DNA of 22,538 nt from Trichoplax adhaerens (taxonomy: Eukaryota; Animalia; Placozoa), in NCBI RefSeq assembly GCF_000150275.1, contig NW_002060982.1, forward strand, positions 185,773 through 208,310. Direction: 5' to 3'. Below are positions 3,970 through 22,029 of the stretch, piece by piece (the stretch's first letter is position 1; each line of letters starts with the position of its first letter). The notes beneath the pieces were generated by a model. That model worked only from the letters and a program-made list of their open reading frames with translations. It had not been told where the DNA came from and ran no database searches. The translations under genes and the position numbers were made by a program.

Positions 3970-4232
3970 CTAGAAATTTTGTTCGTTGTTCTTTGACAGA
4001 ATGATGTCATTCCTACCAATAGTTTGCAAAGCCCGCTGCAATCGGCTAATGCTAACATTGGGATGTGCCTTTTTGTACCAGTAATTGAGCAATTCCATTG
4101 CCTGGTTAAAGACATGGTCGCGATTTTGTTCCATTATAACCTTAACACAAATCGTTGGATCTAGGATGGCCGCTAACTGTGGCCAGTCTGTGCCAATAGA
4201 GCTTGCAATAGGGTGAAAATACTTCCTAGGAT
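3970..4232 (-). CDS. Gene 1 terminal exon: death domain (DD-A1)
   Basis: Acceptor ttctacttgtactatatAG in phase 1. The translation DPRKYFHPIASSIGTDWPQLAAIL...QAMELLNYW...SISRLQRALQTIGRNDII matches the death-domain pattern (GxDWxxLA, LxxW, LxxAL...GRxDI). Confidence 0.85.
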
Positions 4233-7200
4233 CTATATAGTACAAGTAGAAACTTTACTATGAAGTACTATACGAGTATGTTGTAACAATTTCAATTGCA
4301 AATAAATTACTTGATTTTACATGATATAAAGTACAATATTTACATAATGAGCTCTTATGTCGCAATTAGAGTTGAATAATCATCTGGTTCGCTATAATTA
4401 TTTATGTAATGGTAATAATGGCATTAGCGATAGCACAGGTGGAACTGTACTTCTATTGTAAGACTAATAGAAATAAATGGCTCTAATTCGAATTTGAATA
4501 ACTCTGTAAACGAACTACTTACTGGACAAACAATGTACAAATAAATTAAGATTGAATATTTTTTAATTCATAAATCATTATTTATTATGTTCAGTAGCTT
4601 ACTAGTAGCAAGAATATTTTAATGACGATCTTAAAAATTCGTCAGTGATATCATTATCTAGTAAAACTGTATGCGATCATATCATCAGTGGCAAACGTAG
4701 CTTAAAGAATTACATCCATTGACGAGGTAAGGTATTCCTATGTTAGAATTTACACGAAGTAATTGCTCTTAATCATATTTGAATCGATCTACAATTGGAT
4801 TACTAAATGCAATTGAGAATGATTGATAGATATCAATTCAATAGAGGTTTACCTTCATCTTTGGTATCTGTCCATCGGTCTAAAGTAGTGGAATAAAAAT
4901 AGTAATAATCGATTAATAGTTCTATCGTTTAAGTAATCAATGCAGTAGATTAGTGCCCATAATTTTTGATAATAATCAACTATTGTTTACGCTATTACAA
5001 AATCACCTTATATTAAATAGTAAAATAGCTATGATACAGTACATTTATGTCTCTTTGCTTGCTCTATCGTATGAATTTAGTTTATGATATCATAAAAAGT
5101 GATAATATAAGAATGAAGCTGCTGTTTATTCTCACATGCTTACCTATCCAGAATTTTTCATTATAAATCATCCAATCGTTTAAAGATTGACTGGCAAATT
5201 CCATCTTACAATGCTTACATCGAATCCAATTTTGATCTCCTTCCTTGTATTCTTCAGTTATACTTGTTTGTGTATTACATTCACTACATTTGACGAAATA
5301 TCGACAATCGGCCCCTTTAAACTTAACCATCCTATCATTGACAGTGGAGATGAGTTTATTCTTGACAATTTCGTGAGGCCGTTTGACAAATATAGAATTT
5401 TTAACTTTATCGATAATCGATTGACTCCTCTTGAGCTCATTTATTTTCTGATAGCAATATTGTAAACCGATATGAGATTCCTCTTTCCTGACTACAAGAT
5501 AGTGATTGTCATTTGCTAAATAATATTTGGCACATTGATAGTATAATTCTACGTCCGTATTATTCCATTCCTTTAAACAGGAAGATAACAAGCAATAATA
5601 AATTCCATCTGGAAGATATGGAATATCTGTATGCTCGTATCCGATGTAGAGCCAATCTGATTGATGATATTTTGATAAATCGAATGGCTTAACATCATAT
5701 CGTAACAAGTATGGAACAAAGTATTGACATTCTTCGCCGTTGTCGTTCTTCTCATTTGTAATTGAACATAGAATATCATAAGCATGCATGAGTGCCAATA
5801 TAGTTTGCTTACTATTGTCATCTAAATTAAATTTATAAATAGCATGATCAATGTATGATCTTGATAATTTTCCTGTTTGGCTTGCTATATCATAGTCACG
5901 TTTTATTTGTGCACTTCCTTGTACAAAATCTTGTAATTGAATAATGGAACGAAATATACTTAACAACCAATCGACATTAGTTATAATAATTCCGTCGTCG
6001 CCTACTTTATCACAGTAGATGACTTCTCCTAAATCGTGTAGATACATTAGCATAGCGATTAATTCATCACGGTTTTCATATAATCCGTATTGTTGAGACA
6101 AGGTTACTATTTGTTGCATTGTCATAATATTATGCACTTGAGAATGTCTAATTTGATTCATAATAGAAGATGCGGGTTGATTGTTAGTAGGGAGCGATTT
6201 ATTTAATATTGTAGCCATGATATACCATCGAATAGGTATAGGATTCGTAATAAATGGCAGTGATTGTACAAATGCCTTAATGATACCATGTAAACGAAGA
6301 CAACATTGTTGACGCAGCTTCTGTGTCGATGGAGTACTATCAAGAGGATTGCAATCAAAAATAACACCAGAAGAATAGATATGACTGGCATAAGAAGGCA
6401 TGCGAGACGTCAATGTAGACACAAATTGATTGAATCGAGTTCGTCCATCTTTTTCATTGGTGATACAATCGCCATGAGAAGCTACTAAAATAATAATAGG
6501 TAATGAATGCTGTGAAGGTGGTAAATGCTGTTCATCTTCACTTTTAATGTTGACATTGATGGTACTTTGGCTTGTATGGCCAGCTATGATTGATGTAAGC
6601 CATTCTTGCATAGCTTGTAAATACGTCGTTTTGAGTAATTTGTTCTTCCTTGTTCTTACCTTGTCGTTAATGTCTTGCTTAATATTAAATACTAAAATAT
6701 AAATACTATTGACGGAGATAAAGGGATAATGAGTAACATGATAGACGGCATGACCTGCGAAATCCCATATTTTAACATACTGATTTTTATCATCTTTGTC
6801 TGCATTTTGACTTTCCATGGACGAACAGTAATATTGATGTAAGCCTCGTTTAGACTGTGATTCTATTGGAATCTCTGTCCTTGCTATCGCTGCATCTTGC
6901 GTAATGACATTAGTTGCAGAAGAATCGACACTGTGTTGTTGCCAATTTGACACAGGTGGATTATTGGCTATAACGGGTTGATCTATTGGATCCATGTCGG
7001 TTACTTGCTGGCTGATGTTATCTTGACTATCGATACTTGGCTGGGCTAAGTCTTGTATGACTGTCTTGACTTTATCGTCCAGTATTTCAGTCCAATCACA
7101 ACCCTCTAAGTTCATAATATTATAATATTCAGTGTCTACCATAATATCCAAACTCTCAGCCACTTGCGTCGGAGATGGACTGTTGAGTGGTTGCTTGGTA

Positions 7201-9025
7201 AATATTTTTCGAAGAGAAGTTTTGCCCACATTGCGAGGGCCAATGAACATGCCTCGTATTAAATGATTAAAGCAATGACCATGTTTTAAGCCTTTGCTAT
7301 ATGCATTGTAATATTTCTTTTCTTGCAAAGCTGTAGAATAACAAAATGCAGAATAGGGTTACGGTTATCCATCGCTCTCTCGTCTACTACTGTATTAAAA
7401 CTTCACTTACCTTTCTGTTGTATGTGTTGATTGTTCTGACTGCCGTCGATAGTATTTGCTGGCGCTGTAACGTTGTTGGTTTGATTCGGTTGAAACAGTT
7501 CAACGGTACTCTTGATGAAATTTCTCGCTGTTGATGTCGTCGATTTCTGCTTGCGGAGAGTGATTTCGATATTCTTTTTGGTCCTTGTAACTAGGCCATC
7601 ATTTCTGCTTAAGGCTGCGATCTGGAGTGACTTGTTAAAGTTATCCACAGCCTGATCGTACTTGCCTTGGCGCTCATAGATAACTCCTATGCTGTTATAT
7701 GACCGCGCAACATCAGGATGATTATGACCAAGGACTGACAATCGAATTTGCAGTGACTTGTCATGCATATCCACAGCCTGATCGTACTTGCCTTGGCGAT
7801 GATAGACAAGTCCCATGTTGTGATATGACCACGCAACATCAGGATGATTGTGACCAAGGACTGACAATCGAATTTGCAGTGACGTGTCATACATCTCCAC
7901 AGCCTGATCGTACTTGCCTTGGTGATGATAGACAACTCCTATGCTGTTATATGAGTTGGCAACATCAGGATGATTGTGACCAACGACTGACAATCCAATT
8001 TGCAGTGACTTGTCATACATCTCCACAGCCTGATCGTACTTGCCTTGGTGACGATAGACAACTCCTATGCTACCAAATGACCACGCAACATCGGGATGAT
8101 TGTGACCAAGGACTGACAATCGAATTTGCAGTGACTTGTCATACATATCCACAGCCTGATCGTACTTGCCTTGGTCATCATAGACAACTCCCATGTTGTG
8201 ATATGAGTTGGCAACATCGGGATGATTGTGACCAAGGACTGACAATCCAATTTGCAGTGACTTGTCATGCATATCCACAGCCAGATCGTACTTGCACAAG
8301 CGATCATAGACAACTCCTATGTTGTTATATAAACTGGCAACATCAGGATGATTGTGACCAAGGACTGACAGTCTAATTTGTAGTGACATGTTATACATAT
8401 CCACAGCCTGATCGTACTTGCCTAGGCGAATAAAGACATTGCCTATGATGTTATATGAGTTGGCAACATCGGGATGATTGTGGCCAAAGACTGACAATCG
8501 AATTTGCAGCGACTTGTCCGACATAGTCCGACAGAAGTCAAGCTTGCACAAGTCGAAGTAGACGCGCCCAATTTGATAATAACTATCGGCAAGACGAGTA
8601 TCCTTTTCGTCTAACCATTTTAATTTCATTTCCAACGATTTCTTAACGTCTTCCAGTGCTCCGATGTAATCCCCTTGGCGTCTCTTAATCTCACTTTCTC
8701 TTTGTAAACATTGAGCCGTGCTCACTTCATCTTGCAGTTTAGTAGCCACAGTTTGTCCCTTTTCACTCCATTCAACAGCTTCCTTGAATTGATATTGTAA
8801 AGTGTAAATGTCGCAAAGACCAAGATAAATATCGCATGCAAGTCGATCAATATCCGCACTAGGATTCGACAACGAAGCAATCTCATCGACAGCTTGTGTA
8901 TAACAAGATAGTCCGTCCACCAACTGGAAGGCAGTCTTGAATGAGTTGCCCTTGTCGTACAGTGATTGTATACGGGTATAGTGCGGAAGCACACTCGTGG
9001 AACGGACAGATTCATCATCAGCCAT
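3970..9025 (-). CDS. Gene 1: spliced TPR-Roc-COR-death domain (ROCO family) protein, join(complement 9025..7411, 7330..5144, 4879..4853, 4232..3970), about 1363 aa
   Basis: Exon lengths 1615+2187+27+263 = 4092 nt give 1364 codons with no internal stop. All three introns are GT-AG and phase 1. Domain motifs are listed under the individual exons. The ATG at 9025 follows an acceptor-like actaac...tgcag at 9032-9033, so upstream (probably UTR) exons may exist. Confidence 0.85.
4594..4788. repeat. Intronic block duplicated at 14741-14934 (about 90% identical) and more weakly at about 19509-19660
   Basis: Shared strings gtagcttactagtagc, aaaactgtatgcgatcatatcatcagtggcaaacgtagct, tattcctatgttagaattta and agtaattgctcttaatcatattt. 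Confidence 0.92.
4853..4879 (-). CDS. Gene 1 27-nt linker microexon, (D)RWTDTKDE
   Basis: ttccactactttAG|27 nt|GTAAAC, phase 1-1 and open. A positionally equivalent 27-nt exon with homologous flanks exists in gene 2. Confidence 0.7.
5144..7330 (-). CDS. Gene 1 exon: Roc GTPase plus COR domain with C-terminal CxxC..CxxC motif
   Basis: P-loop GPRNVGKT (7218-7241), switch-I Thr (SPTQ), G3 WDFAG (6753-6767) followed by VYHVTH, G4-like IILVASHGD. COR signatures PIPIRW, LMYLHDLGEVIY, VDWL, YFVPYLL and LPDGIY; then CSEC and CKHC. Ends at donor ATAG|GTAAGC (5144/5143). Confidence 0.92.
7331..7410 (-). other. 80-bp phase-1 intron joining the TPR exon to the Roc-COR exon
   Basis: Minus strand reads GTAAGT...ttgttattctacAG. 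Splicing gives G+CT = Ala, then LQEKKYY in frame with ORF 5082..7328. Confidence 0.9.
7411..9025 (-). CDS. Gene 1 exon: N-terminal TPR region (degenerate TPRs followed by about 7 conserved 42-aa kinesin-light-chain-type TPR repeats)
   Basis: ORF 7403..9037 contains the repeated unit HPDVAxSYxxIGVVYxxQGKYDQAVDMYDKSLQIRLSVLGHN. It ends at the canonical donor AAAG|GTAAGT (7411/7410); the ORF stop at 7403-7405 is intronic. Confidence 0.92.
7619..8519 (-). repeat. Coding tandem array of 126-bp (42-aa) TPR units, about 7 copies with high internal DNA identity
   Basis: The anchor (a/g)ggatgatt recurs at 7715, 7841, 7967, 8093, 8219, 8345 and 8471, an exact period of 126. Confidence 0.97.
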
Positions 9026-18830: not shown

Positions 18831-19096
18831 TCATTCGGTCATTTTTTTTTCGACTTCGTCAGCTAAAGCATTTATTTCCATCTTACGTAAAGCTTCAACC
18901 ACTGCAGAGATTTTAGCATTCATCCCAGCTTTATCTTTCCACGATTTTAAAACATTGTGCACTTTATCGTAACGTCCTTCATCCTGACTTGATTTAATTT
19001 CATTAATCTTTGTGTCCGTTAACTTTAATAACACTCCAAAACGAACTATATGGGTTCCATTTAGTTTTGCTGCTATTAAATCGAAGCATGCTCTCT
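18831..19096 (-). CDS. Gene 2 terminal exon: divergent death domain (DD-B)
   Basis: Acceptor tcctttgcttttacatgaaaatAG in phase 1. Translation ERACFDLIAAKLNGTHIVRFGVLLKLTDTKINEIK...KVHNVLKSWKDKAGMNAKISAVVEALRKMEINALADEV shows the six-helix DD pattern (LxxW, AxxxxLxxAL, LADxV). Confidence 0.82.
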
Positions 19097-19671
19097 CTAT
19101 TTTCATGTAAAAGCAAAGGAAAAATTCATGAAAAAAAATTGGCAATATTAGCATCGTTTCAAGTCTTCAGCAATGTATCTAATCTAGAACGCAGGCCTAA
19201 GAATGATATTCAGCAATTTTCCTTCACAATAACTGTAAATTTATTCTCATGATTGTAATATGCAATCTAATGTTAATATTAAATGCTATTATTGATTCTC
19301 AGTCACCATATTTTGCTGATTCAATTTCATAATAGTTATGAATACTTATTAAAGCTTGCCGGACGAGCTCTTTTAAAATTAAATTAAATCGAATAGTAAT
19401 TTATCAATGACTGTTTACTATATTGAGTGATTTTGGTAGTTAATATACCATATTGTAATTACAATCTTAAAATGTTCATTTTGCAATATCATAAGCTAGC
19501 AAAATTTTATGCGATCACATAATCAGCGACAAAATCGACAAAAATATTATATCCATTTAAAGCAGGATCTGTTGTAATATTTGCTCTCATTCGTACTTAT
19601 ATCAGTCTATAAATTAATTGCATTATGCATTTTTGAAATGACTGCTAGATATCAATTCAGTGGAGGCTCAC

Positions 19672-19698
19672 CCTTATCTTCCGCATATATCTTTTTCT
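19672..19698 (-). CDS. Gene 2 27-nt linker microexon, (E)KKIYAEDK
   Basis: ctcatttctttAG|27 nt|GTGAGC, phase 1-1. Flanks are homologous to those of 4853-4879 (gatatcaattca..., taataatc...ctatc). Confidence 0.72.
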
Positions 19699-20261
19699 CT
19701 AAAGAAATGAGGTGAAAATAGGAATAATCAATTAGTAGCTCTATCATAATATTTTAAAACAGATGATAGAGTCGTAGGCATGCAAGTGAAATGTATGACA
19801 TGTTTCTCTAAAGAATTTACGATGATAGTTTCCTCCCTTTATCATTTTAGGTGCTTTTACAAGCAGGGAATGCTATCTATGTTAATTTCTATACGCTGCA
19901 TAAAACGATGAAACTAATTGGCTATTAAACAGTTCAATATTGATGACTTATCATGCACTAACGTTAAAAAACAAAATACTATAGGGAAGAGCGATAAATA
20001 AAATCCAGCCGTTTCTATTTACTCCACAAATGAAATGCAGTAGATGAAGTACTCATTTGAAATATTACAATCCATAATACATTTTCAGTAATAAGAAATA
20101 TATTAAAATCAGAAAATATTATTGCAATTAAATAGTAAAATAGCTATGATAGAGTACATTTATATCTCTCGTTGCTTGCTCTATGCGTATGACTTTCGTT
20201 TATTATATCATAAAAAGTGATAATATAAGAATGAAGCTGCTGTTTATTCTCACATGCTTAC

Positions 20262-21480
20262 CTATCCAGAATTTTTCATTATAAATCACCCAATCGTTTA
20301 AAGATTGACTGGCAAATTCCATCTTACAATGCTTACATCGAATCCAATTTTGATCTCCTTCCTTGTATTCTTCAGTTATACTTGTTTGTGTATTACATTC
20401 ACTACATTTGACGAAATATCGACAATCAGCCCCTTTAAACTTAACCATCCTATCATTGACAGTGGAGATGAGTTTATTCTTGACAATTTCGTGTGGCCGT
20501 TTGACAAATATAGAATTTTTAACTTTATCGATAATCGATTGACTCCTCTTGAGCTCATTTATTTCCTGATAGCAATATTGTAAACCGATGTGAGATTCCT
20601 CTTTCCTGACTACAAGATAGTGATTGTCATTTGCTAAATAATATTTGGCACATTGATAGTATAATTCTACGTCCGTATTATTCCATTCCTTTAAACATGA
20701 AGATAACAAGCAATAATAAATTCCATCTGGAAGATATGGAATATCTGTATGCTCGTATCCGATGTAGAGCCAATCTGATTGATGATATTTTGATAAATCG
20801 AATGGCTTAACATCATATCGTAACAAATATGGAACAAAGTATTGACATTCTTCGCCGTTGTCGTTCTTCTCATTTGTAATTGAACATAGAATATCATAAG
20901 CATGCATGAGTGCCAATATAGTTTGCTTACTATTGTCATCTAAATTAAATTTATAAATAGCATGATCAATGTATGATCTTGATAATTTTCCTGTTTGGCT
21001 GGCTATATCATAGTCACGTTTTATCTGTGCACTTCCTTGTACAAAATCTTGTAATTGAATAATAGAACGAAATATACTTAATAACCAATCGACATTAGTT
21101 ATAATAATTCCGTCGTCGCCTACTTTATCACAGTAGATGACTTCTCCTAAATCGTGTAGATACATTAGCATAGCGATTAATTCATCATGGTTTTCATATA
21201 ATCCGTATTGTTGAGACAAGGTTACTACTTGTTGCATTGTCATAATATTATGCACTTGAGAATGTCTAATTTGATTCATAATAGAAGATGCGGGTTGATT
21301 GTTAGTAGGGAGCGATTTATTTAATATTGTAGCCATGATATACCATCGAATAGGTATAGGATTCGTAATAAATGGCAGTGATTGTACAAATGCCTTAATG
21401 ATACCATGTAAACGAAGACAACATTGTTGACGCAGCTTCTGTGTCGACGGAGTACTATCAAGAGGATTTGCAATCAAAAA
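20262..21480 (-). CDS. Gene 2 partial Roc-COR exon (COR portion), 5' part lost in the assembly gap
   Basis: Near-identical to 5144-6361 at offset 15118: four amino-acid changes (I>V, R>H, K>E, M>V) and about ten silent changes. Same donor ATAG|GTAAGC at 20262/20261. Confidence 0.9.
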
Positions 21481-21530
21481 NNNNNNNNNNNNNNNNNNNN
21501 NNNNNNNNNNNNNNNNNNNNNNNNNNNNNN
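21481..21530. other. Assembly gap (50 N)
   Basis: Run of N. The sequence beyond it does not continue the homology with gene 1. Confidence 0.99.
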
Positions 21531-22029
21531 TATCGATATAACTATAGCGACATTTTGCATTACAAATAGCATCCAATAAACTGTGCAGAACATTCGGTCT
21601 TCGCTATGACACGTCTTAACTTGTTAGATGCTTGTATAGTATCACATCAGTATATTAATGATATAATCCTTATAGATAAACAAGCTTAAAAAGTATTTGG
21701 TATTAATCTGTTTTTACATTACATAATTATGAAGACTCTTAGCATTTGTAGTAAGCTTAGTAAGCTATCAGTAATTGATACTTGTTGAAACTTTATCGTA
21801 CTAAAACAAAACTTAATGCAATACTGTAAGATAACTACATCAATTTTTACGTAAAGTAATACACGGATTGATTTCATACGGAGTATAGTAGAAATGCTAT
21901 TTAGTTATTATAACTTAAGATCGAATTTATAACTTATAAAATGCTACCATAAAAGCATAACCTAAATTTTGATAAATTGCTGCTCCAACTGAACTATAAA
22001 CGAGATCAAACCAATCACTCTATGCTTAC

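Follow-up and report, generated by a model that had tools for sequence, protein, structure and literature searches.

In a 22,538-nt window of the placozoan Trichoplax adhaerens genome (contig NW_002060982.1, positions 185,773 to 208,310), a gene on the minus strand encodes a ROCO protein that combines an array of seven tetratricopeptide repeats (TPRs) with a Roc-COR GTPase and, by a predicted splice, a death domain. The differences between the repeat units are concentrated at six positions of the 42-residue unit that align with the ligand-contact positions of the TPR groove. At groove positions, nonsynonymous change (dN) exceeds synonymous change (dS); they have changed in amino acid about three times faster than silent sites. 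The paralogs of the gene draw on a common pool of units and differ in the number that they carry. We consider it probable that the array is a sensor diversified by unit turnover and by selection on its groove, with a relay through Roc-COR to the death domain. All coordinates below are positions in the window unless another sequence is named.

A repeat array with six variable positions

The open frame that holds the array spans 9037-7403 on the minus strand, and its start ATG lies at 9025. Seven in-register units that begin with HPDVA start at 8476, 8350, 8224, 8098, 7972, 7846, and 7720, and Tandem Repeats Finder placed 7.2 copies of a 126-nt period at 7626-8534, with 86% matches. Codon p of unit k starts at 8476 - 126(k-1) - 3(p-1), and the variable codons are p = 6, 9, 10, 13, 16, and 17. 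An earlier note on this DNA, made from the sequence alone, had listed the residues at position 6 (N,S,N,W,N,W,R), positions 9-10 (NI,NN,HN,GS,NS,HN,NS), and positions 16-17 (IR,DR,DD,RH,HH,HR,ER); these match the translation exactly, and position 13 reads N,V,V,V,V,L,V.

The same note had called most positions nearly invariant, which is somewhat generous. In units 1-6, 92 of the 126 nucleotide columns and 23 of the 42 residue columns are invariant; when the diverged unit 7 is added, the numbers fall to 71/126 and 15/42. Positions 28, 35, 30, 39, 26, and 29 vary too. Unit 7 is the C-terminal cap, and its final nine residues are diverged. The residue identity of units 1-6 is about 76% (150 differences in 630 comparisons), and the mean identity of the array including its caps is 65%, with other arrays in the genome (a 105.6-Mb assembly of 1,414 contigs) reaching 85-87%.

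Of the 258 residue differences between unit pairs, 90 fall at positions 6, 9, 10, 13, 16, and 17, a share equalled by 1 of 200,000 random six-position sets; this concentration is not chance. Plotted on a 100-degree helical wheel, these positions have a mean resultant length of 0.75, which is matched by 60 of the 12,376 six-position sets within helix A, and their spacing thus places them on one helix face, as had been proposed.

The variable positions align with the TPR ligand groove

The array was matched by the Pfam families TPR_12 (460.6 bits; cut-off 30.1) and TPR_10 (273.9 bits; cut-off 27.5). In an AlphaFold2 model, it is predicted to form alternating helices with a pLDDT of 75-93, helix A covering unit positions 2-18 and helix B covering 21-39. 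The best Foldseek matches, at a probability of 1.00, were consensus TPR superhelices (CTPR), TPR-peptide complexes of the kinesin light chains KLC1/2, and LGN.

HMMER alignment to a designed consensus TPR equates unit position 5 with consensus position 1, and unit positions 6, 9, 10, 13, 16, and 17 correspond to canonical TPR positions 2, 5, 6, 9, 12, and 13. Among 6,887 TPRs, positions 2, 5, 9, 12, 13, 33, and 34 are the most variable, and all of them lie on the concave face; HOP holds its peptides through positions 2, 5, 6, 9, 12, and 13 (Magliery and Regan 2005, PMC1261162). Position 6 is often an Asn that contacts the ligand backbone (PMC1261162), and the corresponding unit position 10 is Asn in 279 of the 351 units that we sampled genome-wide. 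Judged by this alignment and by the published survey, the six variable positions would be the concave-face ligand-contact set of the TPR, in agreement with the assignment made in the earlier note.

Amino acid change outpaces silent change at the groove positions

Choosing the most variable sites and then measuring dN at them would be circular, and we therefore took the canonical set, unit positions 6, 9, 13, 16, and 17, as the a-priori site class. The genome-wide sample comprised 351 units from 30 loci, and the pairwise test was run on 23 arrays. By Nei-Gojobori pairwise comparison, the array of the window has a dN/dS of 2.4-4.8 at the a-priori sites, depending on the units included, and of 0.44-0.57 at the other sites; with the variable sites of the array itself as the class, dN over dS is 2.9-4.8. 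The genome-wide codon comparison that had been suggested as a check gave a nonsynonymous excess at the a-priori sites, with a ratio (omega) above 1 in 20 of the 23 arrays, including all 19 with a proportion of synonymous differences (pS) of at most 0.56. The remaining arrays have ratios of 0.67-0.90 at these sites, and the other sites range over the arrays from 0.19 to 0.71. With increasing saturation of silent sites, the ratio at the a-priori sites declines towards 1. Positions 6, 13, 16, and 17, followed by 35 and 9, are again the most variable in the other arrays.

A count of the minimum steps between distinct codons, which is very conservative because it saturates early, gave a ratio above 1 in 23 of 23 arrays (other sites, 0.3-0.8). 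In the array of the window this ratio is 3.0 for units 1-6 (p = 0.005) and 1.9 for all seven units (p = 0.047). Using a two-class codon likelihood model on 43 internal units of the closest paralogs, we obtained an omega of 3.7 at the a-priori sites versus 0.87 elsewhere, and omega = 1 was rejected with a likelihood-ratio test (LRT) statistic of 53; sites 6, 9, 16, and 17 are individually significant above 1. Family-wide, pS is 0.15-0.16, and the proportion of nonsynonymous differences (pN) is 0.43-0.45 at the groove sites and 0.08-0.09 elsewhere, so that pN in the groove is about 2.8 times pS before multiple-hit correction. The dN/dS ratio is conservative, since Nei-Gojobori disregards transition bias. 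The pairwise, minimum-step, and likelihood analyses thus all return dN > dS at the variable sites, and the diversifying selection that the earlier note had proposed for them is largely borne out.

A young paralog family with a shared pool of units

At least eight paralogs carry the same N-terminal domain, namely the gene of the window and those designated C1295a, C1295b, C1404, C1381, C1239, C449, and C1386, the last counted by DNA match only. Between paralogs, the N-terminal domains have a pS of 0.066 and a pN of 0.039. The internal TPR units show a pS of 0.160 within arrays and 0.153 between arrays, and for 12 of 43 units the nearest neighbour is a unit of the same array, compared with 5.3 expected by chance. 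Units do not group by gene, and the family draws on one unit pool. The arrays hold from 4 to 11 HPDVA-type units, with two types of cap unit occurring across the paralogs; recent paralogs differ both in array length and in groove residues.

These values also bear on the idea of a frozen scaffold, which did not hold up: because the unit pS of 0.15-0.16 exceeds the 0.066 of the non-repeat N-terminal domains, the uniformity of the scaffold mainly reflects the youth of the family. One paralog, C1295a (C1295:1-10000; array near L034 2322-3198), has an in-frame TAA and unit spacings of 252 and 246 nt rather than 126, and is probably a decaying copy; the stop and the irregular spacing suggest gene birth and death.

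The most uniform TPR arrays of the genome are found on C962, C963, and C1028 and at C1413:6718606-6722259, with 10-29 units at 85-90% nucleotide identity, and several of them lie on tiny unplaced contigs; no partner domains turned up in those of their flanks that were inspected. For the uniform arrays on C1413, C1383, and C1414, the flanks examined for partner domains gave only TPR matches or nothing.

Comparison with Trichoplax sp. H2

Three pairs of orthologous arrays were built between the T. adhaerens genome and that of Trichoplax sp. H2. In the C1381 pair (425000-434999 versus NOWV01000207.1), the five-unit array (6218-6847 of the H2 sequence) differs at 69 of 630 nt (11%), in clusters, while the flanks differ by 0.8-1.2%, and the cap unit switches type. 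The diverged units are closer to units of other paralogs than to their positional partners; a search for exact donors found better matches in other paralogs (up to 96%), none of them identical. This divergence fits conversion from paralogs or old allelic lineages. A chimeric assembly is a residual explanation for it, with no assembly gaps nearby. A further cluster of 26 differences in this pair lies at 4447-4946 of NOWV01000207.1, and the same H2 sequence carries at 148-582 a small gene with only a CARD (92 amino acids), which precedes P0001, the H2 member of the family, by about 5 kb.

Unit number is equal in all three orthologous pairs between the two lineages compared. At the locus of the window, divergence from NOWV01000293.1 is 0.4% in the flank just upstream; the adjoining 8.9 kb are 0.9% diverged and contain no identical run longer than 816 nt. 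In the Roc-COR exon, 46 of 1,528 positions differ between the two orthologs (3.0%, counting a 6-nt indel; window 5801-7328). A sharp divergence boundary separates this exon from the TPR exon and intron, which have no differences over 1,707 nt; it may reflect conversion from a paralog in one lineage.

Domain architecture and gene anatomy

The window is AT-rich, with a GC content of about 0.27-0.44 and only five open reading frames of at least 100 amino acids in 22.5 kb. Among named proteins, those of Trichoplax sp. H2 come closest (90-96% identity), followed by more distant ones of Trichoplax adhaerens. A bacterial origin was rejected in view of the few open reading frames, a GC content near 30%, GT-AG introns, the size of the assembly, and these Trichoplax matches. 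All array units sit in one exon, and the exon junction K/A is identical to that of the H2 gene model P0002. The two coding exons were searched and folded separately, not joined into a spliced protein. Pfam placed Roc (46.2 bits; cut-off 27) and COR-A (41.7 bits; cut-off 35.3) within exon 2, with Roc directly followed by COR, as in ROCO proteins; read as motifs, the P-loop GxxxxGK[ST] and the DxxG of Roc are intact. Death was matched at 3970-4245 (39.7 bits; cut-off 22.6). H2 relatives carry the death domain PF00531 within one gene model, and intact ones have TPRs, Roc-COR, and death domain in the same architecture; here the splice from exon 2 to the death-domain exon was placed from sequence only. 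Neither NACHT nor NB-ARC was matched by Pfam in either coding exon, nor did a Pfam search of the coding exons find a kinase domain. Because its switch is Roc-COR and no NACHT or NB-ARC domain is present, the protein is not a NOD-like receptor (NLR), although by analogy it can be said to have NLR-like logic, with sensor repeats, a nucleotide switch, and a death-fold output. The features are listed in Table 1; the N-terminal helical region is of low confidence in a single-sequence structure model.

Between COR and the death domain there are two CxxC pairs (CSEC...CKHC) that the H2 relatives also have; this segment, a possible zinc ribbon, was matched by no Pfam family. A second copy of COR and the Cys-rich segment occurs at 18831-21576 on the minus strand. 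It shares about 98% identity with 5068-6362 and has a death-domain exon of its own (18831-19154), which is rather different. A gap of 50 N (21481-21530) cuts this copy where Roc and any TPR array should lie, and no TPR was found in the 1 kb beyond the gap.

Table 1. Features of the TPR-Roc-COR-death-domain gene, in window coordinates
Feature	Position	Strand	Basis or remark
N-terminal helical region, 141 codons	8603-9025	minus	nearly identical between paralogs
Degenerate N-terminal cap TPR unit	8477-8602	minus	in register with the array, without HPDVA start
Seven 42-codon TPR_12/TPR_10 units	7595-8476	minus	Pfam, Tandem Repeats Finder, and translation
Unit u1	8476-8351	minus	126 nt
Unit u2	8350-8225	minus	126 nt
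Unit u3	8224-8099	minus	126 nt
Unit u4	8098-7973	minus	126 nt
Unit u5	7972-7847	minus	126 nt
Unit u6	7846-7721	minus	126 nt
Unit u7, C-terminal cap	7720-7595	minus	126 nt
Linker from array to end of exon 1	7411-7594	minus	sequence read
Intron 1, 80 nt, GTAAGT...AG	7331-7410	minus	sequence; donor at 7410, AG ends at 7331; junction agrees with P0002
Exon 2: Roc GTPase, COR, Cys-rich segment	5144-7330	minus	Pfam; donor G/GTAAGC
P-loop GPRNVGKTS	7241-7215	minus	motif read
DFAGH (DxxG)	6764-6750	minus	motif read
CxxC...CxxC motifs	5288-5196	minus	motif read
Death-domain exon	3970-4232	minus	Pfam Death; acceptor inferred from sequence, without transcript support

Evidence against the reading and alternative explanations

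Several observations weigh against a sensor with a groove under selection, or limit the evidence for one. The gene of the window has 0 differences from NOWV01000293.1 in 1,707 nt (window 7246-8953, covering array, linker, and intron 1), a comparison of low power given a neutral divergence of about 0.5-1%, at which about 2-3 groove changes are expected even at an omega of 3.5. The array is not hypermutable, and there is no sign of continuing change at this locus between the lineages. The C1295b array and its counterpart on NOWV01000105.1 have 11 units each with all groove residues the same, and 5 mismatches in 4,479 nt overall. The earlier note had named arrays fixed across individuals as a refuting outcome, and by that measure the comparison counts against continuing change at the locus of the window; of the three pairs, these two arrays are unchanged in H2, and the C1381 array is 11% diverged. 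The concave-face assignment rests on alignment and literature, not on model coordinates. In the codon likelihood analysis, sites 25, 28, 29, 35, and 37 also came out above 1, probably from exchange between units; recombination of units violates the single-tree assumption and inflates tree-based site tests, and we therefore gave more weight to the pairwise measures, which need no tree. The ratio of 4.6 for the 25 closest unit pairs was not used as an estimate, as the choice of pairs biases dS downwards. Finally, Kamm 2019 holds that the TPR-type repeats of placozoan NLRs are probably not involved in the recognition of pathogen patterns (PMC6321704).

In an alternative reading, the groove residues of each unit were tuned once to different parts of one endogenous partner that is itself conserved (a cytoskeletal protein, for instance, or one in signalling) and are now under purifying selection. 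The excess of amino acid change would then record past specialisation that followed the duplication of units and genes, with no arms race or non-self recognition. The identity of the array with its H2 counterpart and the retention of all variable residues in C1295b are what a fixed partner predicts, as are the unit features shared by position between paralogs (e.g., the L18-C19 form of unit 2 in the array of the window and in C1295b), and among solved TPRs the nearest ones, those of KLC and LGN, have conserved cargo of the cell as their ligands. We nevertheless judge a fixed partner unlikely. Paralogs as recent as an N-terminal pS of 0.066 have already diverged in unit number and at almost every groove residue, one orthologous array (C1381) has been overhauled, and the in-frame stop and irregular unit spacing of C1295a speak of family birth and death; a death-domain output and an expanded family also suit sensor repertoires better than housekeeping adaptors.

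The variation could instead be neutral drift of unconstrained surface sites on a young scaffold, with no positive selection. TPR positions 2, 5, 9, 12, and 13 show the lowest conservation across TPRs in general (PMC1261162), and youth accounts for the similarity of the scaffold. However, neutral sites cannot exceed the synonymous rate, and the groove pN is about 2.8 times pS, with the same direction in 20 of the 23 arrays and an LRT statistic of 53 against omega = 1; codons have changed at two or three nucleotides (AAC, AGT, and TGG at position 6, for example) while most silent sites are unchanged. Drift fits these data poorly, and we regard it as improbable. Still less probable is the modular recognition code suggested in the earlier note, taken as one of the TALE/PPR kind, in which positions 6, 9-10, and 16-17 of each repeat would specify one element of a polymeric ligand; such a code finds no support in these data. 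The same few positions do vary in each unit, and the units are otherwise interchangeable, but solved relatives bind peptides over several repeats without a per-repeat code (the KLC and LGN complexes, and HOP; PMC1261162), and the variable positions draw on a wide range of residues (2.3-3.75 bits), not on a small alphabet. As for an assembly artefact, in which units from several paralogs were collapsed or joined into chimeras, several of the most uniform arrays are on small contigs (C962, C963, and C1028), and the neighbouring gene copy is interrupted by its 50-N gap; yet the independent assembly of Trichoplax sp. H2 has the same seven units base for base, the reading frame is open, and no Ns lie in or near the array, which makes an artefact extremely unlikely here.

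Relation to known systems

Fungal NLRs contain uniform TPR, ankyrin, and WD repeats with positively selected sites on the concave face (Dyrka et al. 2014, PMC4986451). Among metazoan repeat proteins, the same study found such uniformity in only 0.8%. The parallel that the earlier note had drawn with these proteins is apt. Like the TPR arrays of fungal NLRs (e.g., Podospora anserina NB-ARC/TPR), the present arrays consist of near-identical 42-residue units of the kinesin-light-chain type with a few concave-face positions under positive selection, a number of units that varies between paralogs, and exchange of units between family members, and the array of the window matches the Podospora 42-residue repeat structures 4Y6W (E 2e-18) and 4Y6C (1.5e-17). 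Unlike the fungal proteins, it occurs in an animal, is joined to a Roc-COR GTPase and not to NACHT or NB-ARC, lies N-terminal to the switch, and has a predicted death-domain output. Its units 1-6, at about 76% identity, also fall below the fungal class, which is defined by at least 85% over at least 100 residues. Repeat-number polymorphism is allelic in Podospora, while unit-number variation is known here between paralogs only. The present array adds to the known cases in which the variable sites of a repeat array are under selection, such as those of the fungal NLRs.

At least 17 ROCO genes with TPRs, leucine-rich repeats (LRRs), CARD, and death domains have been described in Trichoplax (Civiero et al. 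2014, PMC4104024). The present gene is one of these or a close paralog, and the TPR-Roc-COR-death architecture was already listed for Trichoplax. That survey gives domain cartoons only, with nothing on repeat uniformity, groove sites, dN/dS, unit number, or exchange (PMC4104024), and a search of the open-access literature turned up nothing on variable groove sites, dN/dS, or unit exchange for the TPR arrays of placozoans.

Brown algae have expanded sets of LRR-ROCO and NB-ARC-TPR candidate receptors, the repeat cassettes of which are shuffled and positively selected (Zambounis et al. 2012, PMC3341825; PMC11378527). The resemblance lies in expanded ROCO or TPR families that have been proposed as immune receptors. 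In the algae, however, each repeat is an exon of its own, subject to exon shuffling or alternative splicing, whereas all units sit in one exon here; the algal ROCOs also carry LRRs rather than TPRs and have no death domain.

The fold, the groove geometry, and the ligand-contact positions 2, 5, 6, 9, 12, and 13 are common to KLC, LGN, HOP, the consensus TPR, and the present array. KLC, LGN, and HOP are, however, conserved single-copy adaptors without family expansion, internal uniformity, or fusion to Roc-COR or a death domain. DAPK1 unites ankyrin repeats, Roc-COR, and a death domain in one animal protein, and the present gene shares with it the combination of a repeat domain with these two. 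It differs in having TPRs rather than ankyrin repeats, in the lack of a kinase domain by Pfam, and in belonging to an expanded, fast-evolving family.

Proposed mechanism and significance

We propose that the array would act as the ligand-binding sensor of a placozoan TPR-Roc-COR-death-domain protein. The N-cap, the six near-identical internal units, and the C-cap would stack as a kinesin-light-chain-like TPR solenoid, in which the side chains at positions 6, 9, 10, 13, 16, and 17, on one face of helix A, would line the concave groove and set what binds there, most likely an extended peptide or a protein surface. Each paralog could acquire a specificity of its own as units are duplicated, lost, and exchanged between paralogs and new groove residues are then selected. 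A ligand in the groove may alter the state of the Roc-COR GTPase switch, and the death domain would then be exposed or assembled and could bring in further death-fold proteins, in the manner of immune signalling or of signalling from a receptor to cell death.

Placozoans lack canonical Toll-like receptors and LRR-type NOD-like receptors and possess NLR-like genes with TPR or WD40 repeats (Kamm 2019, PMC6321704). An immune or non-self role for the present family is a guess by analogy, drawn from its architecture and its mode of evolution. We put forward only tentatively, as a possibility that we hold to be less likely than not to apply in full, that the family is an animal counterpart of fungal NLR diversification built on a ROCO GTPase, in which turnover of TPR cassettes and selection on the groove residues would yield a germline repertoire wired to death-fold signalling and directed at non-self, symbiont, or pathogen ligands. 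If this is true, a strategy best known from fungal NLRs, that of uniform repeats whose variable sites are selected, would have arisen in an animal on another molecular switch. This family offers a concrete candidate set of sensors by which placozoans may recognise non-self, and the six variable positions per unit are the residues to exchange between paralogs.

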